Positions 753-30,011 of a stretch of DNA of 64,000 nucleotides are shown one piece after another (the stretch's first letter is position 1; every line of letters begins with the position of its first letter). The stretch comes from Orbicella franksi (Eukaryota). Location: assembly GCA_964199315.1 (NCBI GenBank), contig OZ116698.1, positions 11,842,001 through 11,906,000 on the forward strand. Direction: 5' to 3'. Both the position numbers and the translations under genes were made by a program. The notes beneath the pieces are model-generated. The model saw only the letters and a program-made list of their open reading frames with translations. It was not told where the DNA came from and did no database searches.

Positions 753-917
753 GAACCGGCTCTTAATGTGTGACTTCATAGCTCAATTGGTAGAGCATCG
801 CACCGGTATTCGCGGAGGTCTCGGGTTCGAATCCCGTTGAAGCCCTGATTTTTTCAGGCTTCTTTCCAATTGCTTAAATTGGAAAATTTACTGCGGTGAT
901 CATTCTTCACTTTCAGC
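753..917 (+). mobile_element. tRNA-derived SINE-like repeat (pseudo-tRNA head 772-845)
   Basis: A box TAGCTCAATTGGTAGAGC, B box GGTTCGAATCCC, acceptor-like gacttca/tgaagcc, T6 run at 849-854, non-tRNA tail; flanked by a 14-bp direct repeat agcgactgttatat (739-752, 918-931). Confidence 0.75.
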
Positions 918-2828: not shown

Positions 2829-3117
2829 CGTTGTTTTCTCTTCTTAAAAGACCACAGAATTTATAAAAATAAAGAAAACATTTCCCTGGAAAATCGCTAT
2901 ATCATTGTTTTCCCTGTTTAAAAGATCACAGAATTTATAAAAATAAAGAAAACTTTTCCCTGGAAAATCGCTATATCATTGTTTTCCCTGTTTAAAGATC
3001 ACAGAATTTATAAAAATAATATAAAACATTTCCCTGGAAAATTGCTATATCATTATTTTCCCTGTTTAAAAGATCACAGAATTTGTAGAAATAAAATAAA
3101 ACGTTTCTCTGGCAAAA
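2829..3117. repeat. Tandem repeat, about 74-bp unit, about 4 copies
   Basis: taaaaga(t/c)cacagaatttataaaaata...ccctggaaaatcgctatatcattgttttccctgtt recurs at about 2845, 2919, 2993 and 3067. Confidence 0.95.
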
Positions 3118-6100
3118 CGTCAATTCATGTACATCAGTCGCTTTATGACTTTTATAAGTGTGAAAAAAATTCAATTCAATTCCGTATATGAGAAATAATA
3201 TAGTTCCTGACTTGCAGTTAAGTAGATTTTAGAGCATGCAGTGGAAACTGGCGACTGCCTCGTTCCCTTCACTACGCCATTAAAAGATCATACAGTGAAA
3301 ATTTAGACGAGCGAAAAGATTCAGTTCAGTTAGGTTTTCTCAGTTTTGCGTGGAGGTGATGCGGATGTGAAATTGGACCGAGAGAGAGATGGCCGTATCC
3401 TTGAAAGTTAGCCACAGTTAAGGCGTTTCATTGCAAACAGTGGTAAAGTTTACATGAAAAGGGCTAATCAAGGAAATGCATGAATACTGAGGCATGAAAT
3501 AAATACATAATCTCACGGTTAGAGCCATAGAATTATAGTTTCCACACACCTGCACTAAACAAGGTGTGATGTTAAACTCAAACTTCACAAACTGCTGTCA
3601 TTTGTTTTGTGAGGATCAAACATAACATCAGTCGGATAACTTTTTCTTGTTTGATTTCCATACCCAACAGTTTTCTTAATATTTCGCCATTCATGTCAAC
3701 CACTGTCAATTTCATGCCAGATATAAATAATTTCAATTTCATTTTGAGCCACCATAATTAAAGTGGGTTTGATAACCAATTTTTCATCACTGTCCTTTTC
3801 ACCTGCTTTCGTAGCTAAACGCTGAAAAAGTAGGTCCTTGGCAAGGAATAGTTTGCTTTGAAAGACATTATTTCTAACTTAACTTTTTAATACAGTTGTT
3901 AACGTTTGTTTATAGCAGCTCTATAACGGTTACCGAGTAAAAAGTCTTTTAAGAGAAAGGGCGGCGTTTTGTAAGATCGGCTGCTGAGTTTCGTATTCAA
4001 CCACTGTGAAAAAGAAAGCCAATTAGACTGATAAATGTGACAAGCGGCGAAACCTTACATCATTGCGCTAAAAATGACTTGAATGCACATTATATTTCTT
4101 GACAAAACATTTGGTTATATTATTCAGTGACAGGTTTAAACATAGTTTTCTGCGCTTTCGTGCCACACGCTCTCTTTGTTTACTAACACTCTTTTGAAAT
4201 TACGGTAATTTAACTCGAAACATTATCAAGGCTGTGCCCCGAGGGAGTCAATCTTTCACAACCTTGTAGACTAAATACATATTTTGAAAAAGCTCTCATA
4301 TCGATATGCAAAGTGACATAATGATCCTAGAAGTTTTTTCAGCACGCATTGTTTTAGAAATAACTACTCTTTTATCAGTACTGTAGAACTAGGAAAAAAT
4401 TAAAAATCGGTAACAATTAATATGTATGTGCGCGTTCATATATTTGTTGTATGATCAAAAGAGGAGAAAACGTAAGATTCGCACCTGTTCAAGACTGCTT
4501 CATCGGCAAGGTCATGAGACACAAAATGCTAATTTACTGAAGATAGAGCTGATAATCCGGCCAACTAGAAGGCAGTCATACAGAAGAAAAGAGAATAATA
4601 AAGTCTCTTAATGTGTAAATGGTCTTAATGCAAGAAGGTATTATTTTCTCGAGTGCAACGTTTATACGCGAGGGTTAAAGTTATTGCTAAATGAAAAAGT
4701 ACTTTATGAAATGAAAAAGTGCTGTACTTCGAAAACTGTCCCGCAATTTAAAGTATACTGTATTGACAAAACGTTTTGTGTTCAACAACAGATCGATATC
4801 ACACCGACTTTCTGACATAAGAAGTTTATAAACACACAATTCATTTATAAATGACACTTATGGATCTTGGGAAAACACATTTCATGCGACGGCAAACGGC
4901 GTCCGAACCAGCGCCTTTCGAAAGTTCATACGCTTGCATGTTAAGGTGAGAGAAAACGAAAGCACTGTAACACGGTCAAAATCTGATGCCACCTAGCGGC
5001 CGAGTCATTTTTCTGTGGGGAACTGTACTGTGTTGTAATTGAAAGGCTTTTGTTTGTCATCGATCTCAGTTTAATTTCCAAATGCTTTGCAGTTTAATCG
5101 TTGTAAACTGAATAGTTCAACATCAGAATTAAACTCACTGCGGATGTGAATCTTAGTTTGCTGGAAAGATCTTCGATTATTTTTGATCTGAAAATCGGAC
5201 TCAATGGAAGGAGATACAGGCTGACGTATAAGGTTGACATCGCAAACATCACTGACGCTGTACATTGTGAATTACTGCGCTCATAGCGGATTGCCTTATT
5301 ATACTGACATTGTCAATATAATAAGCCAACGTGACATACAGCCTCAAGAGCTTTTAGGTTTTAATACAAACTTCCTTCTCGGCCTGTCAGGCTCAAACAA
5401 ATGCATCAACACAGAATGACTAGGATAATCAGTACGGCGTATAGTTCCTCTTGAAACGAAACCTTGATAATTAAAGTTGTTTTCACCGCTATGAAGGATA
5501 AAACCGACCTTCAGTACTAATAATTAATTTTCTTAAGAGTGAGTAAAAATGCGGTAAATTTGAGATAATTTCGCGCGGTTTAACATAGCCTTACAAATTC
5601 CTTGAGCAAATTTCAAATGCGATGGTATTTTAGATGAATGTGCGATGACTCATGGCGTATCGCAAAAACTTTATTAGCAGGGTTTTTTTTAAATATCCTC
5701 AGCCCACATGAATGCAGCGGGCATTTATGAGCTGTTTAATAATTGTGCCGAAAAAGCGCGAGTTCAAATTACTTATCCGGCTGGCCTTGGAAGTGACAGG
5801 GGCCCGAAAATTTATTTTATTGAGTCATCAATATTTCAGTCAGAATGTCATCAAAACTAATGAACTAATAAGTTAGTGTCAGTGACAACTTCATAAGTGC
5901 CCTATAGATTTTCACAGAGTATGAATTGTGTTAATTATGATTATTTACAGGATCGGACACCTTTTACAACCATCCAATAATAATTATTAAAAAAGAAAAC
6001 AACTTTGGACTCTTAAAGTTTCTTTCAAAGTCGGGGTTTATTAATCTTTTGAAATGAAAAAGCCATTCTCCTTTTTTTTTTTTTTACAATTGATTTATTC

Positions 6101-8740: not shown

Positions 8741-11543
8741 GGCAAAACCTAGAACGTTCCCTGGACTCGTGATCTGATGCAACCGTGAAAGGCGTTGTCA
8801 AAACATCCTGCTAAAGGTCAACTCCCAACAGGCAATTGCAAAATGATCTAAATTCTTACCGATATTTCTTGTACCCAGAACTCTGGTCCCAGCAATTCAA
8901 AGGGAAGATAATGCTGTCCAGCGGATAAATAACTATCCAGTAATGGAGAGGGGGAGTCATTTATGATAGTGTCATCCACCCTTTGAACAACCGTGAAATG
9001 AGCAACTACGTACTCCATGAGAGAATATTGCCAACTACGCCACTTTAACCAGTTGAGAAAAATGCGATCTTCTTCTGTTGCTAATCAATCGTTTGTGGAT
9101 TTGGTTTAGTAATCTTTAGTTTCATTACCACTACAAAAACAGGATTCAGGATGGGAGGTGTCGCAGTGTGTTAAGTGACCAAACTCAAATTTCTTCTTAC
9201 AATACCAATACAATGTAGAGAAGAGGGTTTGACGAGAATATTATCGACTTCGACTTACCTACCAACGGATGGGCAAAATAGATCGCAAATTTAGGAAACC
9301 TGTCATGAACTGGAATCCCAGCCTTCCTCCTGATTGCTTCATGTTCCAGGTCATGTTACCATGTCACTGGGTGGGGTGCAAGGCCTGCTGCCTGAAATGC
9401 TTACCCTAATTCAGACAAAAATATGTGGTTTTTCTTCAGACCTAGCCCCAATATGAGTCCAATATCGATTCGTTACTCTACACCTCTAAAATAAGTACAA
9501 GTCAGTCTAAAACATGACCTCTGCTTACAAGGAAAGGCTGCAAATTCCAGATATTTATGGGGAAGCAAACTTGTTTCTTTTAAGCAGCACTCAACTGCCT
9601 ACCGAGGCCAATTGTTGCTGTAATCTTTGTATCGATTAGTTTATATATTTAAATTTTTATAGTCTAGTTTTTAAATTTCATAATCTAGTTTTTCAATTTC
9701 AAATTTTATAGTCTAGTTTTTGTACTTTTATTGAATAGATAATATATTTAAATTTTACATTTTAATTTTCAGTTAGCATACACGTTCACATTTAAACGAG
9801 CCCCAGGCTCACTGGTCAAATGTTTTTTTATTTTTTATTTTTTATTTTTTTAAAAAAAAGGGCTGAGTGCAAACCACCCCCTATTTCAGGTTAAGATGTT
9901 AAAAAAATCTCTGTCTCAATTCAACACAAAACAGCACCAAACCCTTAGGGATACACATCCCCTTATAGCGTATTTAAGGAAGGAGGGGGAAAGACAATGG
10001 ATTCTCATACGAACACTGCAGTCAGTGGCAGAACTTGGCATGACGTCCTTCCAGTCAAATTAGACTACACCTTGACATGGGACATGTCCCATTCGTACCC
10101 GTATTGAAAAGGGAGTAAAGCGCTATTATCCTGGAGCAACAGCCATGTTACCTGATGGCACAAAGACGTTACCTTGATACGAAAACCATGTGTCCAATTC
10201 TTACCCGTAGCCAGAAATCATGGCATCTTTATTTGAAGTCATCTAATGACGGAACGCTAAAACCGAGACAATGTCCATCATTTTGGGGCGCTATAATCTC
10301 CACAAGAAGGAAATGTCAAAGATATACAGTGAGACACTTCAGCTTTGGATGATCTAGAACTCGAGATAACTGTTAACGGAAATAACAGTGATAGCTCAAC
10401 ACCTAATGTTTTCAAGTTCAAAGTGCCTCTGCGATCCTTTTTGCAAAATCCTGTTTTGCACAGTGCAGGGACAGAAGTCTGATGCATCCGGTTCAACGAG
10501 GTGGAGATCGCATGTTATTTTACCTTTGAACTACCCTATTATGCACATTACATTCATGCCAGTAATTACACAATAGCAAATTTATTCCAATGACTAGTCA
10601 ACCTATTTAACAACTATATACAAAACAAACCTTAGTTTTAAGTTACTATTCTGTAATGTATGGTGTTTGCTGTCGTTTCCGACCAAACGACCACTGAATA
10701 CGAACTTGTGTTTAGCCTATGAACATGATTAAGTGGGTTGTAAGATCGCTTGAAATACATTGCCACGACGAGTTCGAGGTGATACCGTACAAAATCCTCT
10801 TTATGGCGGTTAACTCAAAATGCATGCGGTGTATAAAACGTTTTTATATAACTAGGGTAAGAAAGAAGCAACATCCTTATAGTAATATAATAATATACAA
10901 TTTTAATTTATATCCTGATTTGGGGTCCAAAAGGCTGCACTGTAATGTGAACTGTTACCAAAAAACATTTTCAGTTGAAAAATGAACGCTAGTTTGCTAA
11001 ACTAATATTTTACATAAGGGAATTTCGGGTATACGAAGCGATTTAAATGATGACGATTGTAATTCTTGGACTTTGCTAACAGAACGTTATTCTCCTTAAA
11101 GGATTATAACATAGTTCTCTTGGCGGTTATCGCAATTATCTTAGCATAAAACGAAGTTTTGGACTACTTTATCATTAATTTAGTTTGCTTTGTATATTTT
11201 TGAAGCTCTTAACTTGCCGCATACTTACTTGAATATAGTCTGTTGTCTCCTTCAATCTGATACAAAACCAATATCGATATATAATAGTCTGATGTTTGCG
11301 CTATTCCGTTCTCATTTGCAAGAATTCCTGGATGAAATAAGGTGTCAGTACTCGCAAACTCGTACCATGAAAGGCTATCTCTCAATAACGAACTCTAATG
11401 ATCTGATTGGAGCCCCGTGTCATAGTATCCAGTCCTAATTTGAAGGATTCTTGGGCAAAATGAAAAGCTTTCGTACGTAAATGAGCCTAATGACAGTCCA
11501 TAAACGCTGCTTATCATTCAACATAGCTTAGTTGTGATTATTA

Positions 11544-11785
11544 TTAAAGGAGCTTCGTCACGGTTTGCGTGCCTAAAAAACTTAAGCCTAAATTTCTGAA
11601 GTTTGTCGTTTGCAATCCGCATTAATCTTCTACGTCCTTAACCACTCTTGTTCCTTTATGGCTTATTGTTATCTGTTTGATGTTTTTCTATCTTAGTAAA
11701 CTATTATTTTCAGGTTTCCTTAAATTAAAAGGTACTTTAGTACCTGGCCAAAATATCTCAAAATACCGTGATTGAGCTCCTTTAA
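11544..11785 (+). mobile_element. TTAA-flanked MITE (Kolobok-like), copy 1
   Basis: TTAA|AGGAGCT...AGCTCCT|TTAA termini; the internal sequence is shared with the copies at 44268, 57941 and 37793. Confidence 0.8.
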
Positions 11786-12035
11786 ACTATAATATGTTGA
11801 TTTTAGTTGGGCTGCAAGGCATAATTCTGGTAGAAGAGTCAAGGTATCTGTTTGTATTAGTATGCGTTCCCTCTTACTTGCCAATTTCAGTGTAGATGCT
11901 TGTAATACAGGTCATGGACTGATATGGACAGAGTAATCCCTCAGTTACATATGGGCTTAGTCAAGGCGAATTTTGTAAGCGTTTTCAAGTCTATGCGCAT
12001 GATGAGGTGATCACATGCAAGGTTGCCGAGGATAT

Positions 12036-12853
12036 TTAACTTTCTACCTCGTGAGTGTACATGTGTCTTCTCAGATCAACTTTGCGCATGAACGATACGC
12101 CACATTCGTCACACGAGAAAGGCTGAAATCCTTTGTGCTTCCGACAGTGCGTGATCAGATTGGACGACTGACTGAACGACTTGCCGCAAAAGCTGCACTG
12201 GTGAGGCTTCTCTCCCGTGTGGATGTAGGTATGCTTCTTCATGTCAGACTTCTGGTGAAACCTCTTGCCACAGAACTGACACTCAAACGGGCGCGTGTCC
12301 GAGTGGATCAGCATGTGAGTTGATAACGTCGACGAGCGCTTGAAGCTTTTACCGCATGCCTTGCACTGGAATGGTTTCTTGTTCGAATGCACGATCATAT
12401 GCTGCTTCAGGCTGATCGAATTGTTGAAAACTTTCTCGCAGACCTGACAGCAATACAGCTGCCTTTTTTTTTCAGAACCAGTAGCCTTGGATTTGTCGTC
12501 TTTTTCAGCCTTTTCTGTTCCAGGCCTAATTACACAATTCATCTGCTGCTGACCATTTTCCTTCTGGAATTCATCGTCCGTTTGAGTGTTTCGTTTGCCA
12601 ACAGCTCCTGCGTTTGGCATCAGGACATTGTAATATCGATACGCCCCGGCTGCAGACGGTTGATTCTGGAGCCGTCTCACTTCTGCCCACTGCTGCATCC
12701 AGCGAGCAAATGCTTCTGATCCCGCGTTGTAAGATTGTTGACGGAAGTTCCAAAGGGGGAACTGTGGGGCCTTCCAGAACGGACCTTGGAGTCCTTTGGG
12801 GGAGGGAGAAGGGAATGTTGAAAGTAATCTCAGTCCTGTTTCCAATGGCATAC
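12036..12853 (-). CDS. gfi1: Gfi-A terminal zinc-finger exon (five fingers, equivalent to Gfi1 ZF2-ZF6)
   Basis: Part of ORF 12036..12875. Acceptor ttttcaag| at 12854-12855; five C2H2 fingers with TGEKPH-type linkers. Confidence 0.95.
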
Positions 12854-15800
12854 CTTGAAAATAATGAAGAAACAAATGAATGNNNNNNNNNNNNNNNNNN
12901 NNNNNNNNNNNNNNNNNNNNNNNNNNNNNNNNNNNNNNNNNNNNNNNNNNNNNNNNNNNNNNNNNNNNNNNNNNNNNNNNNNNNNNNNNNNNNNNNNNNN
13001 NNNNNNNNNNNNNNNNNNNNNNNNNNNNNNNNNNNNNNNNNNNNNNNNNNNNNNNNNNNNNNNNNNNNNNNNNNNNNNNNNNNNNNNNNNNNNNNNNNNN
13101 NNNNNNNNNNNNNNNNNNNNNNNNNNNNNNNNNNNNNNNNNNNNNNNNNNNNNNNNNNNNNNNNNNNNNNNNNNNNNNGATGGATGAATCATAGAATTAT
13201 ATAATTGAATGATCAATTATAGATAAACAAATAAATCAAAACAAATTTGACACATTGTTTTAAGCAGACTCTAAATATAACTTTGGGGAGAAACTAGTAC
13301 CTGAGCATATCGTATTGTATTCCATATCGAACCTTACTGACGGATGAACAAATTCAAACTGAAAACTTCACAGCTATATGTTTTTCTTTTGGCAACTCTT
13401 TACAGCTTCAAAGATACCTTACATTTGAATAGAATCGAAGCGGTAGCCGTTAAATTAATTTAAGAAAGGAAGCTCTCTTGATGCATGCATAGGATTATAA
13501 TCTGAAATTTGGTGTTATAGCACGAGAAGGATATGTAAAAGGCGAGAGGCTAGAGTAATCCTATCGTTTAACAATGATTTTTTCGAATTTCCTTGTGGAT
13601 GTCAAACTAGATTTGATACAATTTTCCTTCCTTCATGCTGGAGGAAGATTTAGTAAGTGAAAGAGAAGATATTGAAAGCAATCATTTCCTCTTGGTGTTT
13701 GCAATCCCCATTGAAAAGAAAGCGAAGAAAGCGGTCAAGTTTCTCTCACCAGTGGAATAAAACGGTGATCTGTTCTGCAGCTGGTAACTATTCACATCAT
13801 GACCAATGTCTTTGTTTGAACTTGACTCTTGACACGTGGTTTCCTCTTCGTCCACATCGTGTGAATTCTCGTCACTGCTACTTTCATCTAGAATAGGAAA
13901 AATGGAATGTAAAACTTTACTGTTCAGAAGAGTAACCGATGTCAATTGTAACCCTAATAGGACGTCTGGAGGTTCCGAAGTAATTCTTCACCAGAAAAAA
14001 AAAATATTTGAGTGGTAACTGAAACTAAAACACCGAAAAATCGGTCGGCTTGGCATTATAATAACCAAAACGATGAAATTCAAAAAAATCCGACCTCGGT
14101 TTGCGTTGTGAACGTTGTAAGCTTTCTTCAAGACTCTTTACTGAACTGTTCCGACTTGCCCTGCTTGGAGTTTTATGCCAAACTTACAGCCTTTGAAATA
14201 ATGAAAGCAACGGCTGACCAAGTTATTATCGATCACTCAGATTATAAAATTTTCAGTATACACTTTGTGTTGTCATAACCTGCATGCTTGCTTTGTATCG
14301 ACATTTTCGGGAGAAGTCAGGTGTTGGTGTCTCATGTTTAAGGATAAAATGGTGCTTCGAGCTTAGAAATTGATGAACTCGCCATTTTGATTCTGATTTA
14401 GCCTGTACTTGAACCCTCTTTGTAACTCGGGTGTTGATCCTGATTCTCTGGCCTAACACAGAGGCACAAATGAGTAATGTAGAACCATACGCAACTGAGC
14501 ATTCTGACAAGGTAATAAGACTCTAACGAATTGTCAAACATCATATCTAGGAAGAAAGATTTACTAAAAAATTGTTTCCGGGGACATCAGGCTGACAGTT
14601 AACGCTGTCTTTGTTAGCATGACGCGAAAAACAAGGAATACTGTTACTTTCCCTTTTGATGAGGTGCTAGCAGACTCCTTGGCTTACTCTTTAAAAGTTT
14701 GTTCACATGTCTCCACTTGTCTTCTGTCCGAGAATATACATGCACGTGGGCATATAGAGGCACGGCGAAGTTAAAGTGCTTTGGCCAAGAAAATATCGCA
14801 ACCCTTAAGCCCAACCAGCTTTCCAACCCGGTGATCAGAAGTCTAGCAGAATATTACGTCCGAGCGCATCCGACTCAAGAAGAGAGCAACAACTGAAAGC
14901 TGTTGTGGTTTAGTATCGAAGGAACCATAAAAGAATTTAGAGAAAACGTAAGCACTTTCGAAATTCCTTCATAACGAAGGACCTTTCAGGAAAGAAACAT
15001 TTCATATTTCACCTGCATTTCTCAGCAAAACTAGTTGAAACTCTTCGAAAAGCAGCTAAACTACTTCCTAAGAAAGGTTTCCCAAACAATTTTAGTCAGC
15101 TATGGCTACAAATCATTTTTTGGCAAGAGTTTCATTAAATTATCATCAAGGACAAACGAAAACGTTGGCGAAATATGAGAGCGTTTATGCACCAGTTCCT
15201 ACAACACTCGAGTTGCGCCCCTGTAGCAGGTGCCATTTAACCTCAGGTAAAGAGCTGTCAATAAACTGACCACTGCTAAACTTACCAAATATCTAAACTT
15301 TACAGAACGGAGCAATTTCGTTCATTAAATGTCGATGGATTTTGGAATTTTGTTCTTGTGTGGCTATGTAAAAACTGGGTATGGCGAAAATGGTTGATTT
15401 AGTTGGTCAAGAGAGACTTGGGAGAAAGGTATGTAAAGTGCTACTGAGTTATCAACTCCGGAGCCACTTTATACGACTGTTTATCATAACGATATTTTAA
15501 AATGTTTTGTAGGCCACCAAGTTGGGCATATGTTGGAATAAAAAACTGTCAGTTGAGTTTGGTAATTTCAAATGAAATTTCTGTTTCAAATCAGCAGAAA
15601 AAGTTTCCCACTCACAAGTCGAAGACTGAAAATTCTATTTAGAATACAACCAAGCAGCGAAACGAAAGAAGGAAATGGCACTGTCCATCTAGAAATAAAA
15701 CTTTTAAGCTTATATCTTATAGTTTCAGAACTCAAATTCGTTCTTTAAAAATGTCGTTTAAAACTTGAAGAAATGTAACAACACGCAAAGAAGATTGAGT

Positions 15801-16910
15801 GAAATATTCTCTGGATGTGTACGTTTAAAAGATTTATGAAATCGGCGAAATTTCCGTCAGAGACAGGGTGCAATGCCGGTAAAATAATGATTTGGTCTCA
15901 TTTGATTAAGTTACTCTTCGCAGTTTCATTCTTTTCTCAAACAAAACGGAGCTGAGGTAAATACTCCAGAACGGCTTTTGTCGTGATTTATATTCTATTT
16001 CTAAAAGGGCCCGATGGAAAGAGCCCGATCGTTAACGTGCTTTTAATTGTATCGCTAGAGTCAAAAGCAAACTTTGAGTTTAGATTCACTAGTAAAATGT
16101 TGGAGTTGAAAATTTACTCTTAAATGCCCTGGTAAGTCGTCTTGGTCCTTTTCAAATTCGCTATTGTTTAAAAGTTATTAAACTCCTTACCGGTTTGGGG
16201 TTGAACAGTATTGTTTTTTTCCTGATATTTCCACAGAAAGTTCAGTCCTATTCTTGCGACAAAATGTTTGCTTCTATTATGATTTTTTCCCGCAGAAATA
16301 AAATCTTATCAAGTTTTCCAGTTTAAACAGCGCTAAACGCCCAGATTGTAAACGTGTTTACGTGAAATCTACTTACTAGGTATGAAATATTATAAATTAG
16401 TCCAACAACTCATAAACTGCATAGATAATCGGTTGTATCCAACTCACGACGTTTAGTACTTATCGAGTGCAATATATTCGCTCTGATTTTCCGTGATTTG
16501 AAGACGGTATTCATTGCCATATGTGGGTTGAGTTTGTTGGTGGCTCTCGCCTTGCTCCGAGGGTTTTTCTCAGGGTTCTCCGGTTTTTCGTCCCTCCAAA
16601 AAAACTTAACATCTCCTAATTCCAATTCGAACAGGATAGAGGACCTGCATGAAAACCAGGTAAGGCTGATGTGGCTTCCTCTCTCAATATTGTGATTTGT
16701 AAAGCGAGAAGAGAAACGACTTCTACTAGATTTTAGTTTAAACCTGGAAGCCACCCAATGTTCTCCCTACAGATTACGCACCTTTTCAAAGTGTACAAAA
16801 ATGAAAAATCACATACCAGCTCGGCCAGCTTTATCTTTGTGCTCAAATCCGGCATCTTCGGTCTCCAATGTCGAAGAAAGATTCGGTTTTATAAGAAAAG
16901 ATTTCGGCAT
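12036..16910 (-). CDS. gfi1: Gfi1/Senseless-family SNAG + C2H2 zinc-finger repressor (Gfi-A), proximal-start model: join(16910-16817, 13887-13750, 12853-12036), 349 aa, 5 zinc fingers
   Basis: Exon 1 reads [13 protein letters not shown]... (SNAG) and ends G|gtatgt in phase 1. The 138-bp acidic exon has tag|...|gtgaga boundaries. The last exon carries [58 protein letters not shown], the diagnostic Gfi1 ZF3-6 sequences. Total 1050 nt, in frame to the stop. Confidence 0.88.
12883..13178. other. Assembly gap (296 N) in the last intron of Gfi-A
   Basis: Run of N. The flanks aatgaatg and gatggatgaat suggest a microsatellite. Confidence 1.
13750..13887 (-). CDS. Gfi-A internal acidic exon ([20 protein letters not shown]...)
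   Basis: Polypyrimidine tract and ttctag| acceptor, |gtgaga donor, 138 bp, phase 1-1, open frame. Confidence 0.8.
16518..16700 (+). mobile_element. 5'-truncated SINE-like interspersed repeat
   Basis: catatgtgggttgagtttgttgg...gggttctccggtttt... resembles the body of a common anthozoan SINE (pattern recall, not a search). Confidence 0.6.
16817..16910 (-). CDS. SNAG-domain first exon (MPKSFLIK...), proximal start of Gfi-A
   Basis: ATG at 16910, SNAG consensus MP(R/K)SFL(V/I)K, 94 bp ending G|gtatgt. Too short to appear in the ORF track. Confidence 0.85.
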
Positions 16911-19900
16911 TGCTTAACGAAGCTGCTCCTGAGGGTCGAAACTGAAGGGAAGTGGTCAAGGGAATGCTTGCTAGGGAGTGGTTCAGCGACACTATCAGTG
17001 TTTTCAATCACACGACGTCACATAATTAGGCAGAACTAGAGCTTACGACAACATAAACAGCTTATGACTCCATAAGAAAAGCTATAGGGGAACATTCAGA
17101 TAAAACCTTGACCTTGAACTAGAAAATAATAAAAAGAGGTAACTATACGACAGTGTACCTGATTCGGAGATCGTTTTTGGTAGAATGAAATAGCGCGAGA
17201 ACATTGATGCCTTCAAGACAAGCCAATCTAGTTCAAGCTGCCGAGGGGAAGAGGTCCGCATTAGAACTTGTTGTCTGCATGCTGTTATATAGATCAAGTC
17301 GATGAGAGAGTGAAATATCATAGTTTATTAAACTTGTGAGGGCTATTAAGCGTTGAGTTTATTAACATGTTCAATGTCTCAATCTGTTTCTATAAATCTA
17401 TTTGAATGTGAGTGGTTTTCACGCATTTTGAAAATCTTTCAGACGCCTTTCTAACGTACATGTCAAAATTAGGAAACGGCTGATTAAAAACGAGAACCTG
17501 AAATTCTTATTCAAAAAGTCTGAGAGTAGCAATTTTATTTATTAAAATGTCACACCTTAAAATTATATTCATTGCATAAGTTGTTGTCTTCAGGAACAGA
17601 GTAAATGACTGAAGTCATATAAGGATGAAGTTATGAAACGTTTAGTTTTGGGCGTCCCCCACTTTTGTACGCTAAGCACTTTCCCACAGGGAGAAAAATG
17701 TTCCAAAATACTTGTCGAAGACACGAAGACAGAATTTTTAAATTCGAAATCAGGAAAACGAAACACTAAGAAGTTGGCTTTAGAAATTTAAATCAGGGAG
17801 ACAAATACTGGAACTATTGTAGGCGAAATATTGCTAAACTGTTTATCGCACGGTTAAATAAACCTTTTCTTTTCAATTTTCTTTTGGGAAGGAGAAGAAC
17901 GAAAACAATACCCGGTGGAGGTTATCTGAGTCTAAATATTTTATTTATTAACGTATTACTCGAGAGAAAACGCATGTTATTCCTGCAGAGATCCACTATG
18001 CATATCAAAAGACCCAACTGAGCTGCTCAAGGCAGAATTTTGCCAATTATTCAATAGCTTGAAGTGTTCTTTTTTTCATCAACTGTTAAATTCTGATAAA
18101 ACGTAGAAGAAAATTTTTTTGTGAGTGATGTCGTTAAATTTACACAAAGAAAATGCTTGCCTCGTTAATTATTCTCTCCTCTCGACCAAAATTTTATTAG
18201 CAAGGCCAGGTCAGTTAAGCTTAAATTTCTAGAGCAGCGTGCTCCTTTTGTAAAATGACAAACCCTATAAAACTATAGAAATATGTCTCCATTATCACAC
18301 ATTTACACAAAAAAATCAGCTCCAAAGACTGGACTCGTTTAGATTTTTCATGATTTACTGGAAAGGTTTCAAATTGTGCCATCGCCCACGTCTGAACAGG
18401 TGCTGGACGGAATTGAATTTCCTCGCTCTTGTTTGTTTACGGATTTAACACACGCAGTGCATAATAAAAATTTGAAAAAAAAACAAATCACTGATCTTGG
18501 CAAAGGTCTTAAAAAACGTTCCTTTTTTCGCGAGAGAGCTTGTAAGGAGCAATTGTCTGTTTATTTACAAAAATCGATAGAAAGCTTCAATTTTAGGCCT
18601 TTCTTAGAAGCATGTCTCAGAAGACGTATGATTAAGTCTAATATATTTTGAGAAAAACGTCATGACTGAACTCGAGGTTTCTGTACTTAAAGCGTGTGAT
18701 TTTATTCACTCGAAAAGCAATCGCTAGTTAAGCGCAAGAATAAAAATCCTGCCCCTAATTTTTCTTACGTTTACTGCTATATTTTGCACACCTAGCAAAT
18801 TAAAAGTCATCATTAATTTTGTATCAGATTCCAGTGCTTTCTTTCCTCCAACCTACACGAAATTTGGAGAAAACGACGCGATTAAATGAACATTACAATC
18901 CTGGTGCAGTGGTCCTGAAAACAGTCTTACAAGAAAATATGTTTAGTAAAATGTATATTTTGAAGTTTTGAAATCCAAAATGAAAATCTAAATGAAACCT
19001 GATTGAGAGCAGCGTCATGTTGTATAATGGCAGCCAGCCAATATACCACTTTTAGTCAGTAAAAGCTTTTAATACTAGCCTACTGCAGGTGTAATCAATA
19101 GATTCTTAATAGATAGAACCACACAAAAGCGTTGTTAACAAAGGGCAAACTCCGAATAGGGAGTGACAATTTTTCTCAGTCGTCAATATTACATAGTTTT
19201 TCTATTAGTCACAGTGAGAATTTTGGGGGACATAAAAAGACGTCCAATGCAATTTACGACGTAAAAATACTCTAAATAGAAACTGATCAAGGTAACAAAA
19301 ATGCACATGTAGATTATATACCGAGCGTTTTGATAAAAATGCAAGGAGAAAATAGTTTCAGCCCAAGCTAGCCCATGCATAATACAGAGCACACCCCATA
19401 GACAGTCAATTGTCATGCAAGGCTAGTGCGCACTGCAAACATGGGTGTGGATAAAGTTAATATCATTTGACAGACTAATAAATGGCGAGGAAGGCGATTG
19501 AATTATTGCAATTTTAGGTTTTCAGTCAGTTTAGAGATGAGTTAGAACGTAAATGCACGTTTACCACTTCATTTGCACGCCTTAGAAGTAATCATAATAG
19601 GAATAGTTTCTAGCTAGTACCCCGCTGGTATTGAGTAATCACGAGTCCTTGAAGATCACAATAAAAGCGAGGCGTGCTAGCCAACTTCACTGAACTGAAT
19701 TCAGCTGCAAAGCAATAATGTCTAATAACTCAGAAGAGAGCATTCACCACAACCACACTAACATCAAGGAGCTTATTCATCGCTTTTTCTTCACTTTTGA
19801 CAGTTGTTGACGTAACAAGTTTTAAGAGAAAGTTTTTCCTTCCTTTAAGTCGTTTCCTGGCGTGATATATAACGTATAGCAGATTGCTCAAGACAGCTTG

Positions 19901-20209
19901 AATCAAGCATGCAAAATTTATTTCACACCTCGTTGAAATGTTCTTTTACTTTGTATATCCAAATAACGGGAAATATGATTTTGTCTAATGTAGATCTTGA
20001 CCAAATATCTGGCATCGTTCACTTAAACGTGCAGTTACAAACATACTGATTGAATTCAATGATTTTAATAACATTTTCCCACCTTTTTTGCCTGAAATAT
20101 AACTAGTTGTTTGACAAAAAAAGTCAATTAGAAACATATAAATTCAAATTCTGTACATAAATTTCTAAGCGTTTTGTAAGGTCCTGGTTATGGACTAAGA
20201 TCACTAATG

Positions 20210-20714
20210 CACTCTTCTTTATATAACAATATACTTTATAAGAATATCAATGCTGAAATTTTGCGAAATTTTAAGAATATTTTAAGAATAAACCTGAGGC
20301 TGAGATTTTGAAAAGAACATAATTTTGTGTGTTGAAATTTGCAAATGCAATACAATTAAGACTTATATCAGTGTTTTTCACTAAACCCAAGAAAATTTCT
20401 TCCTCTCCCTAAACGGTCAAACTAGCCAAAAAAACAACAAAAACAGCACTAGTTGCATGTTCGATGCTAACAACATTCCTACAAGAAGTTGTGTGAGCCA
20501 TATCAGGTTTTATTGCCTACAGCCTGGCTCCAAAATTACTTCAACGCCATCAAAATCATGATAGGACAGATAATCTAACGATATTTCGGCATAGCCCACT
20601 TTCTATTACTTTAATCTAAGAATATTCCCAAGAATATTTTCAGCCTGAAATCGGCAGAAATATAAGAATGTTCAGCTTGGGCCGGGAAAACAATAGTCTT
20701 ATTAAAAAAGAGTG
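20210..20714. mobile_element. MITE with degenerate TIRs
   Basis: cactcttcttt... and ...aaaaaagagtg inverted termini. Confidence 0.45.
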
Positions 20715-22586
20715 TAACTACACACTACATGTCAACTTTATAAAAGCTATTAGTTGTCATCTCATGACACGGAGAATTTTTTGCTTTCTCTTTTAATTTA
20801 GCTGTGGATAAACAAGCCCGAGATATTCCGGTTTGTAAGTTAAATTGCAATCAAAGTTGAACTAAGGATGAATATTCTAAAATGGCTAAAAAAAAGTAAT
20901 TAGCAAAATCTGTACAAACAGTGAAGGCTAAATGTTTTCATTAGTCCGGTGTGACGACAAATATTCGATTTAATGCCGGTGTGTTGGACCTGAATCTCAT
21001 ACGTGCACTGCTCTGCCAATTTCAAGTTTAAAGGTTGACGTGTTTTTGTCATGTTCGGTTATAAAATATCGACTATAAATCGTTTGGTTTGATGCTTGAA
21101 ATTCCAAATAGTGGCATCTGGATGATGTATTACGGTGTCTAATTGTATTTCTACAAATCACTAGCCCTTGATAGTAGCGCTTAACAGCTTAAAAGCTAAC
21201 CGAACTCAAATTGCCTAAAAGGTTTGTTATCGACTCGTATTGATATTCCTATTTTTGATGCACGACCATGGCGTTGTGTCCAAACTTAAGTAGCGTTGCT
21301 TCAAGACACGTTCATTTAAATTCATGCATAGACATATTTCTGTTTGGAAATTTTTTTTGCTGGAAAATAAAGACACGATTCAATTTTTCACCGTTACAAC
21401 TCGGAGCAGAACCGTACACCTTCAATTTGCTAGGATCATATCCAGTTTGAAGAGTCTTAGCAAAGATTCGCACCCCGGGTGTTTTTCAAAAGGGTTCACC
21501 CAACTTTCTGCCAAGGATACGAATCTAATACCGATTAGCTTTTCAGAGATTTACAATTCCCCTTGCATTTAATTCAGAAATGTAAAATTTGAAACAGATG
21601 CCTAACAAGCAAATATACTGAAAATCATCCAGTCAGAAAACAGGGCAATAATTTATTAGGTGTGGCCGTGTCAGCAAAAGAAAAAAAAACCTCTTAAGGT
21701 TGCGCAATTGTTTTAAAAGGTCCATTTTTAACCAGAGAGCAGGTTCCCTATTCAGCCGACTAAATGGGGTTTTCTTCTGAGCCACCCAATAACTGCACAT
21801 TACGCCAGCGTTGTATTCTAGATTGGGGCAGAACTAGTCTTTAGAGATTACCATGACACAACATAAAGCTTGTTAAGAAACTCCAAACATCTGAGCTCCC
21901 GATACACATCCCGTGTGCTTGAATTCGAATTTAAAGACTCCGAAATACAACTAATTCAGGTTTCCTCTGTTTAATTAACTTTGAAAGCACACCGGGTAAA
22001 CTATGCTGGAATTCAATTTAGATATGACGCTTCGAACATTTTATTGAACGCGCGAATCAGATTTTAATTCAATAACAAAAATGCTTGAAAATTGGTGATT
22101 TTGCACGGATTTGCAGCGTCCAAAAGAACTTCTTTAAAACTTGAAGATTTGCACTTCTTTGGAAAATCGTAGCACTTAAGAGGGGTTTAAAAGCGATTGG
22201 AACGTAAAGAGAACGTAGGCGGAGAAAAATCTCAAACACGATAATCAACATTTTGCCACCGGCCGACAGTAAACACTAAGTTTTGGCCGTAAAATCAAAA
22301 GAAATGTTTAGCTTCTTGCTGATTTCGACAATGTATATTCTTGCACACATAGAAAGTATTTTTTGATGTAAATAGCGGAAATCATTTTAACGAAAAATGT
22401 TTGCTTGATGAAAAGAAAGCTAGCAAGCCAAATTGAAACGACATATTCTGTTCCAGAGTTGGAAAATGCAACATTCAGTCACGCGCTCTATCTAGAACAA
22501 GTTGAAGTGTTTAGGTCTCGGGAATTGAAAGATTAGCTAAAAGAATAAGCAAATCCCGGGAAATACTAATAACTATCATTAAATAC

Positions 22587-23125
22587 CTTCGGAGTCCATG
22601 TTTGTATCGGACTCTGCAGAATCACAGTCATCTTTGGAAGTTTCTTGTAGCGCAATCTCGTCTTCATCATTTTTTGTCGCGGGTAATCCGCTAGGTTCAC
22701 CTTTTAGCGAGGAGGAATTTTGTTTTCCTACAATACCAGACAAAACAAAAATAGGCACATTATTTGAAAACCAGTTCAGTCCCAGATAATGTATTTCCGT
22801 AGACTAAGAGGTAAATCAACTGAGGATCAGAGTCGAAGAGATTTTTTTGAAAATTCATCTCTGAATTGCAACACGAATCACTCATGTGTGATACAGGCAA
22901 TCGCAAAATATGCTCTGAAATAAGGACAAAAATGGGATCTTTGACGCGTAGCAATGGCGGGTACCGGGAAAAGTTAAATGGAATTGTGCAAACCATAACA
23001 AAGAAAGCCCGGGTGAAAATCACAACCAGGTATTTACCTTGTTCATTTCTTGTCTCAACACCCTGGTGCGAAACATCGCTGGAAACTGCAGTGGGCTTCG
23101 TGCGCACAAGAAAAGCTCTTGGCAT
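22587..23125 (-). CDS. Second SNAG start module: exons 23125-23038 (MPRAFLVRTK...) and 22727-22587 (acidic). Distal alternative start of Gfi-A (394 aa model) or orphan paralog remnant
   Basis: SNAG motif at the start of ORF 22760..23125, donor G|gtaaat. The next exon has tgtag| and |gtattt boundaries, 141 bp, phase 1-1, open. It is frame-compatible with the exon at 13887. Confidence 0.8.
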
Positions 23126-25659
23126 TTTGATTTTTGTTCGTTTCTTGCTCTAATAAGGGTGGCCGTGTAGGTCCTCGGGTATTAACGGTACGTGCTGAAG
23201 AGAACAGGTCGTGCAATACGTGGGTTGTTTATCCACTCGTGAAATCTTTGCTGTAAATATTTGATACAAATGAAGATTGAACTTCACAGCCTAGGCTAGC
23301 ACCCTTAAGGCAGGTGTTTTGAGCTTGCAAATGGTCCAAGATGTAGTGCGGTTTCGTCCAATCCCACCTGCTTGATAACTACGCGCTTGGAAAGCTTGTA
23401 AATTGAGTTACCATTTACTTAAACACCGCGCGCGCACTACGGAGACACGTTCTGAAGGGTTCCTGGCTAGAGAACAGAAGTCTACGCCCATATGACTAGT
23501 GATGACCAGGGATATGTCCCATTGTAGCCGTATTTCGATTTTTCAATATCAAACAGTGCTTGTTTGTTTTGCTTGACTATAAATATGCTCTTGCGCGAGC
23601 TCCATTGTTGTGCAAATCCCGGGCGCGCAAAATGGCGCGCGCTCTTCATTATTTATTAAGCAGCACTTTTAGAATGGGAAAGCTAAACCGCGAATCTCGC
23701 AACCCGAGAACACGGATAATAACTTGCACTTTCATTGTTTACTTTTGAGACAGGCTTTATTCCATAAAGATTTAATAGCTAAAGATTATTAGAGTCTGTT
23801 TCTAGTGAGTGACGCCAGTGAAACCGAAGAAACTGTTTTCATGTTTGATCATGTTATTATATTGCTCCTTCGGTCATCTGTTTAGGATTTAACGAAACAA
23901 CATTGACAATTTTCCGTTAAATGATAGAATGTTTATTTTTATTCTTTAATACGCGGATGCGATACCCAGTAATTGATAACTAACTTTTACGCGTGTTTAT
24001 CTCAATCAAAATGAATTTCACGAGCCAGTCTCTGTGCCCACCTGATGCGGATGTTGTCACGTAGTTTGTTAAATAAATTTGAACTAGAACTGTTGAATTA
24101 TATTATATAATCGGATTCAAGTCACATCCCTTGATTTAAACATCCGCTGAACAGGTGGAGAAATCTGAATGATGGGCGCGTGCGAGTGCGCCAGGGCGGA
24201 CATTTAAGGCAGCAGGTCGACTGAACAGAGATTGTAAACCTTAGTCGTTTGAGTTAGCACTGTAGTTGGGTCAACACGGTTTTATCGACTGGCTTCTGTT
24301 TATGAAGTTCTTAGCCTGGCCAGGATGTGTACACATACCGAACAAACTGTACAATAAGCTTGTTATTAACTCTGTTTGTGGTATATTTGCCCCGCTGAAA
24401 GCTCATTACGAAAAGCTGGGTACGTGGACTCAAACCCCGCCAGTCCTAAATTCCTAGTTACGTATACATAGTAAAAAAATCAGTTCAGCCAGGTTGCTTC
24501 AGTTGTTAAAATAAACGTTCAGAATTATATTCGAAATTATGTCACAATGTTTCTGAAAAAAAATCTTTTTGCATTGTCATCAACGCACGTATTATAGGAT
24601 TGGGTGACAATAAATCACGTGACGGTCGGATATTGTCAGTGGGCTCTAATGATTAATGTTGCGAAAGTTTAGACAATGTCAGCACATCTTCCGCTCTTAT
24701 GCCACGATATCGAGGGAATATTGAGTGACTCGTTCTCTCATGTCGCTATTGCTTTTTATTTACTTTCAATCACAAAATCCTCCCTCAGCAGAGTGTGTTT
24801 TCTTACCATAAGAGGCACTCAAAGAGAATATTGTTCTGGTGAGGCATATTTCATAAGGATGGGGTACAACCGGACACAGTTGGCCACTAATTTCCGAAGT
24901 AAAATAAACAAGTTTTAGATTTATGCTTTTATTAGTTATACAAGTTATCTGGAACATAATTGGTACACGCTTTCAAAAAGTTAAGCGCTTCTCAGATAAG
25001 CAAATATTTATTGGTAACTACTCTAGTTGTTGTCAGAAACTGTGCACTCTGCAGAGATTAAATTTCTCTCTGTCTTTGTCGAAATTTTTGTTCAAAGTTT
25101 TCAAAATAAGCGGAATTTGCTACAATTGTTTATGTACTTTTTGCTCATGCGACTATTTCATAATATAACGTGTTACATTCTTATCAGAATGCGACTAGGT
25201 CTTAGCTTAGTTACATTGTTGAGAAATTTAATTCTTCGTATCTCTTGAACCCTTCTTCCAACTTGCAAAGTTGCTAGGGCTGATTGCCTCACGCGACAGG
25301 CTTACGACAAGTCTACAATACAGATTGTTTCGTGTAAATCAAAACTTCAATTCGCTTGCGCCTGCCGTACACGGCACAAAAATGTCGTTGGATTTTGAAC
25401 CATGTTTTAAAACCTTGGCTTACGAAAATGGTGGCAACTCAAACTATGTTTGAGATAGCCTGTTTAGCAGACGTTTCCTTTCCATTTTCCAGCGAGCGAG
25501 CGCGCCTGGGATGGGCAAAAAGGGAGAGAAGTGAGTGGAGAGGACAAGGGAAGTCGTATACAATTTTACACCAAGGGGCTCACTTCTCCAACGACGAGCA
25601 GGGTAGCTCGAGCATTGGGGCAGTGTCAGCGACTCGTTGCATGTATCTAAGGAGTATTG

Positions 25660-28600
25660 TTAATTTGGTGACGTGGACATGAGTACCGTCGGATCAAAAC
25701 AAAACTCTCCGTACGCCTTACGGTTGCTATGACAACTGATCCGGTGAACGTGACTGTGCCTCCTTAAGTCTACTTTGCGGTAGAATGCTCTACCACATGT
25801 CTGACAGGCAAACGGTTTGAATCCCAGGTGTTTACGGCTGTGAGTGATGAGATTGGAAGACTGACTAAAACACTTTCCACACTGGCGACACTTGTGGGGC
25901 TTCTCTCCTGTGTGCACAAGCATGTGTTTCTTCATGTCCGACTTCTGGTGAAATCGTTTGCCGCAATAATCGCAAGAAAATGGCCTGATGTCGGCGTGAA
26001 TCAGCATATGCGTGGACAGGGTCGAGGAACGCTTGAAATGTTTACCACAAGTCTTGCACTCGAATATCTTAACAGTAGTGTGCGTCTTCCTGTGTTGTGC
26101 AAGGCTGACGTAATGACTGAATGTCTTTCCGCACGTGGCACAGCCGTACGGGCGGCTACCCGCGTGTGAGCGCCTCACGTGTACCTCCAAGCCGTGTGGT
26201 GTGCAGAATATTTTCTGACAGGTGTTGCACGTGAACGTGTCATGAGAGTTGCTTTGCTCCAGCTCGTTTTCATGCTGCGCTTTCATGGTCTTTTCGAAAT
26301 GTTCATCTTTCTTGCTGAAAGTTGTTTTCATGTCTTTTGTAGAAGGTTTTCGTTCTGGAAGATTATTGCTTTTAAAACTGGGCTCGTTTAAAATCACTGA
26401 GGCATTGCGTTCTTTCACCCAATGTTTCTTTGACTCTTGAATAAGAAAGGGCAAGTGGCTTTCTTCAGGAACTAACTCTGTGAAGACACAGTGTAGATAT
26501 ACGTTACATATGCGTACTAGCTAAACGAACCAGACAAAAGTGTTAGCACGATTTCCACTTCTTTCTCATGTCACAATGTTAACTTCCCACCACAACAAAA
26601 TTTCCTAAAATGACAGCTATGAGAGATCCGTTCCAACCATGAGGAGGGAGTACGCTAAACTAATGTTTCACGCTCTAAAAATTGATATTTTCACGGTTTT
26701 ATTATTAAGTTAAGTAAAACACTGCGCTGTGGCTAATAATAATAAGGAGCAAGTTCAAGCACAGGATTCGAATATCAACTTGACGTTTCTGATAAGACTG
26801 ATAATCCTACTGCACGAAACAGGCAGTCATCATTTGATTGCAAACGAAAATAAGATAACTTACTTGACTTGTCTCACGCAAGCCTACCACATGATATTTA
26901 AGTTATATTGTTCTTGTTCACGTACTCCCCTACAGTGTAAATCTCGGTAATATTATTTCCCATCTAAGGCATCCAATCAGTCTTTTCGCTTTTTTTTTTA
27001 TTAATTCACTGATTATCATGATTTAACAACCATATGACGCAGTTACGCTTAAAATATCTTAAAATTCCAAGAAATAACTCTGGACTTAATTTGATTTAAA
27101 TTTGGCTTCCCTGGTGGGCCTCTCACCAATCTCCAGTCGCTTAAAAATAATGAAAAATTAAAAAAAACACTCTGTCAACCCGTCAACATCTCCGAAACAG
27201 AACCGACGATTTGAAACACACAAATAAGCCCCAACAAGTGGAATCATTGAATGAACATCAGTGACTGTCCAATGAACAGACTAAGATCTACCGAAAGGTA
27301 TAAATAAGCTGAAAAAAATTTTTTTAGCCCATTTTCTGTTACTAAACGTAGCTTAAAGTGAGGCAATTTTCTAAGATTTTCACTTTAAGATTGTGCTGCA
27401 TTGGGCAAAACAACTTTGAACAAAAAAAATGCCTCAAGGCAAATCCTTCATCGCTTTTCTGTTTTAACACGTCTCTTCAATTTCCTTTCGAACTTTACTA
27501 GAGGAATCGTTAAAACATCAATTGGCATGATATCAGCTTCAGGAGAAAAAAGAACTTCCACTGATCAAAAGGAATTGTTGGATCGGAAAAACAAGGCGTC
27601 GGCGAAGAAGGATAAAAATGGTAAACAAATTTCAAGGGAGTTACACCAAAGACTGGTTCACGCACCTTAGACCAGATTTCGAAGTTAATTGTAAGATGAT
27701 CAACATTTCTTATCACGAAATCGGAACGCATTCGTTCAGCGCCAAAATTTGTAAATTTATTCCATTCATTTTTCCTGAGGCCATGGGCTGGCATTTCCGC
27801 GACTTCCGATTGTAAAGTGGAATAATCAGACGAGTATTTTCCGTGTAGAGGAACATCGTTTTCCTAGTATGCCTAATAATGCGCAGGAACATTGATAAAA
27901 AGTAAACAGGGATTCATGTGCCTTCCTATGCCAGACAAAGCTGAACGCGAGTGATATTTTTCAAAATAAATAGTTTCAAAACTGACTGATTTTTGGAAGC
28001 AAACTCCGGAAAAGTAAAGTTGACAGCTAAGAAGTAGTCTTTCATGTTTGATATGAGCTTTACTTAAAAGTCACAGCTGAATTGGTACGTGTTGCTGTCC
28101 AATTGTTTATCTAACGATGCCTCGTGTACCACTGTTTAGATACTCTGGAGACAGAAGCTAAACAATTCTGTCACATCTTATAAATGCTCCTTCCAATTTC
28201 CTTCAACTTTTGCTACGCGACTTATGATACTTTCTTGTCAGAGTAGCTTGTTTTGCCAATAGTTCAACCGGTTAACGTCTTTAGACTTAATTAAACAATG
28301 CTTCTTCGAACTGGGGTCACGTAAGGTACAGATTTCGTTGTTTCTTCAGGCCCTTCATGTCTTAAAAACCAAATTCTTCCTAAAACAGATGATCAAAGTT
28401 TAAAATGAAAGTTTGAAGTTTGTTTTTTATCGTGATTTCTTTCAGTCGTCGCACGAAAACGATAATGGTGTTGTTATCTTCTAGCAAACAAAATCGACGA
28501 AATTTCCTCTGCATTGTTGGATCTTAAAGACAGTGCAATCTTTACCAAACAGGAACTGATTTCTCGCAGATTTTGTCGCAGCGATTTAAGCAACTTCGAC

Positions 28601-30011
28601 AGAGTGTCGCTGATAAAATGTAACTAACAATGTGCATATTGGCAACGCCTTAATGCGGTTTGATTCTTAACTCTTCCGAAATTAAGATCTATTAATGTGA
28701 ACGAGCACGTTTCGAAACTCGTGCGTAATATCGCAGCATTGATGAAGCAAATTTGCGATTGAATAATTCCCGGAGATTGAATGAATAGAGCAGGTGAAAT
28801 GAAACGTATGCTTCCTCTTTAATCACTGGCTATTTACTCAGTGAAGTTAACTCATTATGTAGATTAACTTCATTGAAAAGTAAATTCAACGAAATCCAAT
28901 CTTTGAATCTGTTGCCGAATATCTCAGTTCTCTTTCTTGCCCAAGAAGGGCCACAAAAAAATTGTTTTCATCTTCATGAGGGTCACATGTTCTATACAAA
29001 CCAAGTTCACATAATATTAGCAGGTAAATGTCGCGCTTATATTGCCCTCCTGTCGATTAAAATCTTCAATAGCACCGGAACGCTTCCTACAGCGCCAGGG
29101 CAAATACTAAATCAGAATTTTCTTTATGAAGCCAGCCATTGTCCTACAAATAAGAGTCACTTTTCACCTTTCTTCCCTGTTTTGTTTGCTTAAGCGCCGA
29201 TTGACTGAGGAAAATCTCATATCCGGACTTAATACAAATGAGCTTTTTGAGTGAACGTTCAAAACTGTGATTTTGCAGGAAATAAAATTTTCAAAGGAAA
29301 TCAAATTTCTTCAGTTCTCTCGGTCGGGTGTAAACCAAACATGGGACAAATGCAAAAAAGAAATACCAAAAGTTTAGAAAGCAAAGCAATGAATTATTAA
29401 ATGTACCGAAAAGAAAGAAAAAAAAGAAACCATATATTTATCCTGATCTGTACGTGTAGTTTTTTTTCTGTCGAATTTCTTGTGGAAAAGTTTTCGTTTT
29501 ACTTCTTAGTTGCAAATAGGTTGCTTAGTCTTAAACACGAATTTTATGAAAATTCTACACCGTCCGTATTTTGAAATAAAAATGTTTAAAGAAATAAGTA
29601 AATAGAGGCTGAACAAGTTACTCTGCAATGATTCGAAACGCAGCAACTATACAATCACGGCATTATTAGTCTTTTTCGTTTTGTTTTTTCCTTGAAAATC
29701 ATGCCAAATTCAGCACATTAAATAACTATTTTATGAGAGCAGTAAATATCCTCTTCAATGTAACGAATTAAAACCGTCCTTAGCCCGCCCAGAAAATGGA
29801 AAAATACGGTATTGCGTTTGTTAATTTTAAAGTAGCCTTGCCAAATCCGCGCCCGGAGAAGACATCTTTTTTCCGGCCATAGCAAAATCAATGCTTAAAT
29901 GATCACCAATGTACGCAAGATAACAAGATGATGTATTCTCTAACCTGGAGGCGCGCTTTCAGTGACATCCGCGTGTCCCTTACGGACTCGAACAAGGAAA
30001 GATTTCGGCAT
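25660..30011 (-). CDS. gfi1: Gfi1/Senseless-family SNAG + six C2H2 zinc-finger repressor (Gfi-B): join(30011-29945, 26435-25660), about 280 aa
   Basis: Exon 1 reads [12 protein letters not shown]... and ends G|gttaga. Acceptor ttattcaag| at 26436-26437. Fingers include [19 protein letters not shown] (Gfi1 ZF1 signature) through RKVDLRRH. Additional small internal exons are not excluded. Confidence 0.9.

Follow-up and report, generated by a model that had tools for sequence, protein, structure and literature searches.

A Gfi-type gene of the stony coral Orbicella franksi with two probable alternative SNAG-coding first exons and one finger domain

Two SNAG-coding exons lie upstream of a single finger exon in gene A

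The 64 kb of AT-rich animal DNA analysed here (from Orbicella franksi; this whole stretch is called the window) hold a zinc-finger gene of the Gfi family, gene A, together with its upstream paralog, gene B. A first-pass annotation had counted three SNAG-coding start exons in the window, all ending in phase 1, against only two Gfi-type zinc-finger exons, and it offered two readings of this surplus: either one Gfi gene is started from two mutually exclusive SNAG exons, or one of these exons is the orphan remnant of another paralog. We use the word head for a SNAG-coding first exon. Gene A has two heads, E1a and E1b, and both of them, like all other features of this gene, are on the minus strand (Table 1).

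The count itself was borne out by a scan, by the sequence and by tblastn. When all six frames of the window were searched with the start pattern MP[KR][SA]F[LM][IVL][KR], only three matches were obtained, at 30011 (MPKSFLVR), 23125 (MPRAFLVR) and 16910 (MPKSFLIK), against a mean of 0 in 300 shuffled sequences. With coral, anemone and Nematostella Gfi proteins as tblastn queries, finger exons were found only at about 26.2-25.7 kb and 12.9-12.0 kb, and between 16911 and 22586 these proteins detected no relic or extra finger exon better than E about 1.

All heads, as well as E2a and E3, end in phase 1, E4 closes with a stop codon, and every junction is of the GT..AG type (in the window sequence the donor GT stands at 23037 for E1a and at 16816 for E1b). 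Joined in this way, E1a, E2a, E3 and E4 form an open frame of 394 aa and E1b, E3 and E4 one of 349 aa, each with five C2H2 fingers; direct reading of the exons showed that the coordinates, phases and both lengths had been given correctly. The spacer of the long form has 45 extra residues, rich in Asp, Glu and Ser/Thr, and the exon E2a is matched by the proteins P0003, P0121 and P0203.

Table 1. Positions of the Gfi-cluster features in the window and, for gene C, to its left (window coordinates unless a contig is named)
Feature	Positions	Strand	Details and evidence
Gene B, SNAG head	29945..30011	-	Sequence; MPKSFLVR at 30011
Gene B, six-finger exon	25660..26435	-	Sequence
Gene A, 5' untranslated region (UTR) of long-form first exon (minimum extent)	23126..23496	-	L001 bases 1-464 against 23496-23033, 98.9% identity
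E1a, long-form first coding exon, MPRAFLVR...	23038..23125	-	88 nt, 29 codons + 1 nt, phase 1; in sequence and L001
E2a, acidic and Ser-rich, long form only	22587..22727	-	141 nt, 47 codons, phase 1 to 1; sequence and L001
Conserved non-coding block, candidate short-form core promoter	17005..17052	-	85% identity to Stylophora over 48 nt
E1b, 5' UTR (minimum extent in RNA contig)	16911..16943	-	Run X1 contig unbroken 16817-16943
E1b, short-form first coding exon, MPKSFLIK...	16817..16910	-	94 nt, 31 codons + 1 nt, phase 1
E3, shared acidic exon, acceptor for both heads	13750..13887	-	138 nt, 46 codons, phase 1 to 1
Assembly gap (N run) in E3-E4 intron	12883..13178		Spliced across by L001 and run X5 contig
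E4, shared last coding exon, five C2H2 fingers and stop codon	12036..12853	-	Window sequence
Gene A, 3' UTR (minimum extent, ~1.6 kb)	10394..12035	-	L001 bases 739-3192 against 12854-10394, 99%
Gene C, third canonical Gfi gene	C1:11837993-11840983	+	1.0-4.0 kb left of window; whole-genome search; loci L007, L008

Both heads are spliced to the same E3

The long form is documented by L001, a 3192-nt JGI metatranscriptome contig, which is about 99% identical to the window and comes from the window species or a sibling species. It maps to 23496-23038, 22727-22587, 13887-13750 and 12853-10394, thus splicing E1a, E2a, E3 and E4 together, in agreement with the earlier claim that the exons at 23125 and 22727 feed gene A. 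The 5' UTR of L001 has at least 371 nt and its 3' UTR 1.6 kb. In one detail this contig departs from the window: within its bases 458-601 (window 22729-22587) the A-run of E2a is longer by one base, and because of this the protein called from the contig, P0001, begins out of frame. P0203, the protein of another JGI transcript, is in accord with the window, and the extra base of L001 is probably a polymorphism or an error of transcript assembly.

For the short form, four RNA runs were mapped on 13179-19000, and the exact 13887/16817 joint was found in a 151-nt contig of the polyA run X1, reading CT..AC on the plus strand, i.e. GT..AG on the minus strand. This contig comes from 16943 through E1b unbroken and then continues into E3. 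Both junctions that the first-pass annotation had named for inspection, 22587 to 13887 and 16817 to 13887, are therefore present in RNA, the former in L001 and the latter in run X1. The introns are empty in runs X1 and X5, so these two libraries are without DNA contamination; run X10 covers the introns too, and there mRNA is not separable from pre-mRNA or DNA. Judged by the presence of sequence words, which reach 16990, E1b with 80 nt upstream of it occurs in 14 RNA runs from about 9 studies, four further polyA runs of the X1 study and one single-cell run among them. In the few transcripts available, no mRNA or protein with both heads was seen, as L001 skips E1b and none of the database proteins read has the two together.

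The intron between E3 and E4 contains an assembly gap, which ends 27 nt upstream of the acceptor AG of E4 (12855-12854). L001 and another contig, from RNA run X5 (loose end at 13748), join 13750 directly to 12853, the latter contig running on from the end of E3 into the first 30 nt of E4. Because two RNA contigs are spliced in this manner, there is no coding exon in the gap and both frames are unaffected by it. The corresponding intron of Acropora, Stylophora and Oculina measures 152-493 nt and has no exon inside. The gap is thus harmless to the coding sequence of gene A.

Both heads are kept in other stony corals

A protein search with E4, combined with a listing of cluster members, gave two protein length classes in every coral genus sampled. 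The long form, in which MPRAFLVR... is followed by GKQNSS..., was found in Oculina, Stylophora, Pocillopora, Porites, Montipora, Acropora and a close relative of the window species, and also in two further coral transcript sets, one of them with the short form too. The short form, MPKSFLI(K/R)... joined straight to the same E3, is represented by isoform X2 of Oculina, X4 of Stylophora, X3 of Pocillopora, X2 of Montipora and X2 of Acropora digitifera. In Porites, Montipora and a JGI sample it occurs in Logan or JGI contigs; at 1.4-1.6 kb these are too short for genomic sequence and must be spliced RNA. In Oculina, Stylophora, Pocillopora, Montipora and Acropora NCBI has the two forms as isoforms of one gene, with both heads and the shared E3 and E4, and both isoforms are already in the NCBI models of six coral species. 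A protein search with the short-form N-terminus itself (P0005, residues 1-74) returned the query alone, since short isoforms were hidden inside clusters. Among the modelled isoforms there are also some without a SNAG start or with an inner E2a acceptor (P0125, Stylophora X3; P0152, Pocillopora X4; P0148, Pocillopora X2).

Exactly three SNAG starts are present in each of the genomic loci from Oculina (L004), Stylophora (L003) and Acropora (L005), and the order B-head, E1a, E2a, E1b, E3, E4 is the same in all of them, with spacing like that in the window: from E1a to E1b there are 5.1-6.4 kb, and from E1b to E3 another 1.9-3.0 kb. The length of E1a is 88 nt in four of four genomes, and that of E1b is 82, 82, 88 and 94 nt, the differences all being multiples of 3. 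In E1b MPKSFLI is invariant in 8 species, in E1a MPR.FLVR is invariant in 12. Pairwise Nei-Gojobori estimates of the ratio of nonsynonymous to synonymous substitution rates (dN/dS), which come from small counts, lay in the range 0.11-0.22 for E1b (first 18 codons) and 0.2-0.7 for E1a. Both heads are under purifying selection, and the check across corals that had been proposed for them thus ended in favour of both being kept.

Transcripts, three coral genomes and coral isoforms agree on what the first-pass annotation had suspected, namely two mutually exclusive SNAG first exons for one finger domain. We consider it very likely that gene A is such a gene, with one finger domain, two alternative SNAG first exons and start regions 6.2 kb apart.

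A conserved block upstream of E1b is a candidate promoter

On the distal side, RNA evidence for a start extends to 23496, where L001 begins. On the proximal side the E1b contig runs to 16943 without interruption, RNA words extend as far as 16990, and at 17052-17005 there is a conserved block. This block, located 95-142 nt upstream of the E1b ATG, has a CCAAT-like element and TGACG, and in a four-species alignment it is conserved in Oculina, Stylophora and partly in Acropora. These features would fit a separate promoter of the short form, for which the block is a candidate.

Conservation of non-coding sequence was noticed at E1a as well. The first ~33 nt of the intron after it (23037-23005, minus strand; GTAAATACCTGGTTGTGATTTT...) are shared without change by Oculina and almost without change by Stylophora and Acropora, and the synonymous rate of E1a is unusually low, with dS of 0.10-0.51 vs 0.6 to saturated for E1b. 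Taken together, the low dS and the conserved intron start suggest a constraint at the nucleotide level, e.g. an element for splicing or regulation. The intron that directly follows E1b carries a dispersed short repeat (16515-16693), a copy of which with 79.5% identity is present elsewhere in the Oculina locus; its summed contig depth amounts to hundreds to thousands in three RNA runs, with many loose ends.

Gene A belongs to a cluster of three Gfi genes

Gene B, the upstream paralog, consists of two exons with an open frame of 280 aa and six fingers. A block of about 0.6-0.8 kb in its intron (28652-29420) is 70-80% conserved with Oculina, Stylophora and Acropora and has no convincing reading frame; it may be an enhancer, an unannotated exon or an RNA.

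Gene C is convergent with gene A and has a SNAG head of its own (MPKSFLVKKR), an RPFDIVNL exon and a finger exon. The latter is 76-82% identical to the Gfi-1b-like proteins P0057 (Porites lutea) and P0094 (Pocillopora damicornis) and to three transcript proteins, and as it lies on the plus strand, it is not the partner of the minus-strand heads. The whole cluster therefore has one head more than it has finger exons, four against three, E1b being the surplus one.

An element of ~235 nt in the 3' UTR of gene A (about 11550-11785) has copies at 44268-44499 and 57941-58180, which are ~80% identical to it.

The stem of stony corals is the most likely place of origin of the second head

Gene A orthologs of the sea anemones Exaiptasia (L002, P0029) and Actinostola (L006, P0025) resemble the coral gene in their four-exon plan and in having a Gfi paralog as a neighbour, and unlike it they are single-headed, the head being MPRSFLVR. 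The 20-26 kb retrieved from these species, the E2-E3 intron included, have no second SNAG start. The Exaiptasia locus also has a convergent zinc-finger neighbour, in a position matching that of gene C. The upstream Gfi-like neighbour in Actinostola (L006, 5812-7110) is annotated as one product of 393 aa; in the 10 kb retrieved upstream of the ortholog of gene A there was no SNAG start.

As the anemones carry only the MPRSFLVR head, we regard E1a as the ancestral one. The distribution of the heads indicates that E1b most likely arose between two splits, that from Actiniaria and that of Robusta from Complexa, i.e. in the stem of stony corals. Its first 14 nt are the same as those of the gene B head, and 13 of 14 are shared with the gene C head, but this match is too little to name a donor, because the amino-acid motif largely dictates those bases; beyond the SNAG codons, no similarity was found among the flanks of the four heads. 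With neither a relic finger exon nor similar flanks, the results speak neither for nor against the side remark of the first-pass annotation that the head may have been captured from a third duplicate which lost its fingers. One speculative scenario, which in its entirety we find rather improbable, is that copying of a head within the three-gene Gfi cluster gave rise to E1b in the stony-coral stem, that the new internal promoter was kept only with a SNAG exon of its own, and that the now fixed variants would act as cell-type-specific repressors of differing corepressor affinity.

Each promoter may supply its own N-terminal SNAG

A SNAG motif of the form MP[KR][SA]FL[VI][KR] stands at the extreme N-terminus in both heads of gene A as well as in genes B and C. 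Proteins of the Gfi/Senseless/Pag-3 family typically have a C-terminal array of six C2H2 fingers, the third to fifth of which are highly conserved. Gene A has five fingers vs six in gene B, with the conserved core KRSSTLSTH..., HQKSDMKKH... and SQSSNLITH... present, and judged by these motifs it would be a divergent Gfi/Senseless-type paralog without one N-terminal finger.

In the mechanism that we propose, transcription from the distal start would give E1a (MPRAFLVR...), E2a, E3 and E4 and hence the 394-aa protein, and transcription from a proximal start inside the E2a-E3 intron would give E1b (MPKSFLIK...), E3 and E4 and hence the 349-aa protein. Each protein would have exactly one SNAG, at its extreme N-terminus, and the finger domain would be common to both, so that the forms would differ in promoter, in SNAG variant and in the spacer, which is 45 residues longer and largely acidic in the long form. 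SNAG mimics the tail of histone H3 and binds the substrate site of LSD1 via its N-terminal proline (PMC13316430). Since the motif must be N-terminal, a transcript started internally would need a first exon that encodes the motif anew in order to give a functional repressor, and E1b is such an exon.

Several points weigh against this reading. The short-form junction in O. franksi is represented by a single contig with a depth of 2, which reaches only 20 nt into E3, and as the E3 contig has a depth of ~10 in the same run, the short form looks minor in X1. In run X23, amounting to ~1.5 billion letters of raw polyA reads, there were no reads on E3 or E1b. The NCBI isoforms are model predictions, though backed by Logan and JGI transcripts. 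We infer the start site of E1b from the contig end and the conserved block, and the absence of a second head from anemones is based on two genomes, one of them with scattered masked letters. That both heads recruit LSD1/CoREST is likewise something we infer, from the motif and the published binding mode (PMC13316430), and that the two promoters might serve different cells or stages is our own suggestion.

It is possible, though in our opinion unlikely, that both heads are real and the choice of promoter is secondary, the SNAG variant and the acidic spacer being there to tune corepressor affinity or stability. On one hand, each head class has a fixed variant, MPRAFLVR or MPKSFLI(K/R), in all species, and the 45 extra residues of the long form are rich in Asp, Glu and Ser, which is what tuning at the protein level might look like. 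On the other hand, the conserved block upstream of E1b argues that regulation matters as well; the two views are in fact compatible.

Much less can be said for E1b being the decaying orphan head of a lost duplicate, unused or spliced only as noise, which was the other alternative of the first-pass annotation. The low depth of the junction contig, the variable length of E1b between corals and the poor conservation of its residues past position 14 would all agree with decay, but the ATG, MPKSFLI, phase 1 and the open frame are kept in 8 species from both major stony-coral clades, Robusta and Complexa, the dN/dS of E1b is as low as 0.11-0.22, spliced short-form transcripts occur in Porites, Montipora and a JGI sample, and the block upstream is conserved. 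Because the frame, start codon and phase of E1b are conserved and E1b is spliced to E3, we reject this alternative as very improbable. Hardly credible is the idea that E1a/E2a and E1b belong to two separate genes, one finger exon being absent from the assembly, for although heads outnumber finger exons in the window and a gap (12883-13178) is present in which such an exon could be placed, this gap is in the intron just before E4 and spliced across by two RNA contigs, a single finger exon stands behind both heads in the chromosome-level Oculina locus and in the Stylophora and Acropora loci, and tblastn revealed no third finger exon on the minus strand.

Comparison with known genes and significance

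The reading of gene A as a dual-head gene can be set beside several known systems. Vertebrate GFI1 and GFI1B are LSD1/CoREST repressors with a SNAG motif and six C2H2 fingers. Gene A is like them in its N-terminal SNAG and in its finger region, which is 73-76% identical to Gfi-1b over about half of the E4 query, and unlike them in having five fingers and two alternative SNAG-coding first exons; to our knowledge, the alternative first exons of vertebrate GFI1 and GFI1B are non-coding. Alternative promoters as such are common. In OVOL2 and Ovo-Shavenbaby promoter choice sets the N-terminus of a C2H2 factor, and one promoter drops a repressor motif, thus changing the activity, whereas both gene A promoters would keep SNAG. 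In UGT1A and the clustered protocadherins related first exons with their own promoters are joined to common downstream exons; gene A differs from these in that there are two first exons only and the repeated part is a short N-terminal motif rather than a whole domain. In the literature library searched, we found no paper on SNAG-coding alternative first exons, nor on this arrangement in cnidarian Gfi genes.

Close counterparts are the coral orthologs (Acropora digitifera, Montipora foliosa, M. capricornis, Stylophora pistillata, Pocillopora verrucosa, P. damicornis and Oculina patagonica), which have the same heads, the same E3/E4 and exon order, and the upstream paralog. Unlike in these species, the sole exact database protein found for gene A of O. 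franksi is a 271-aa product of E4 only (P0002), and judging by this one record, the gene models available for this genome seem to lack both heads. The analysis thus offers a practical correction as to these models and the two heads apparently absent from them, and the assembly gap does no harm to the coding sequence.

For the developmental biology of corals and other cnidarians, the finding opens no major question, but it provides a pair of isoforms to be followed in single-cell data. All stony corals examined have retained the dual-head pair, which may be viewed as a natural example of how an obligatory N-terminal motif constrains promoter evolution, a second promoter being kept together with a second copy of the motif.

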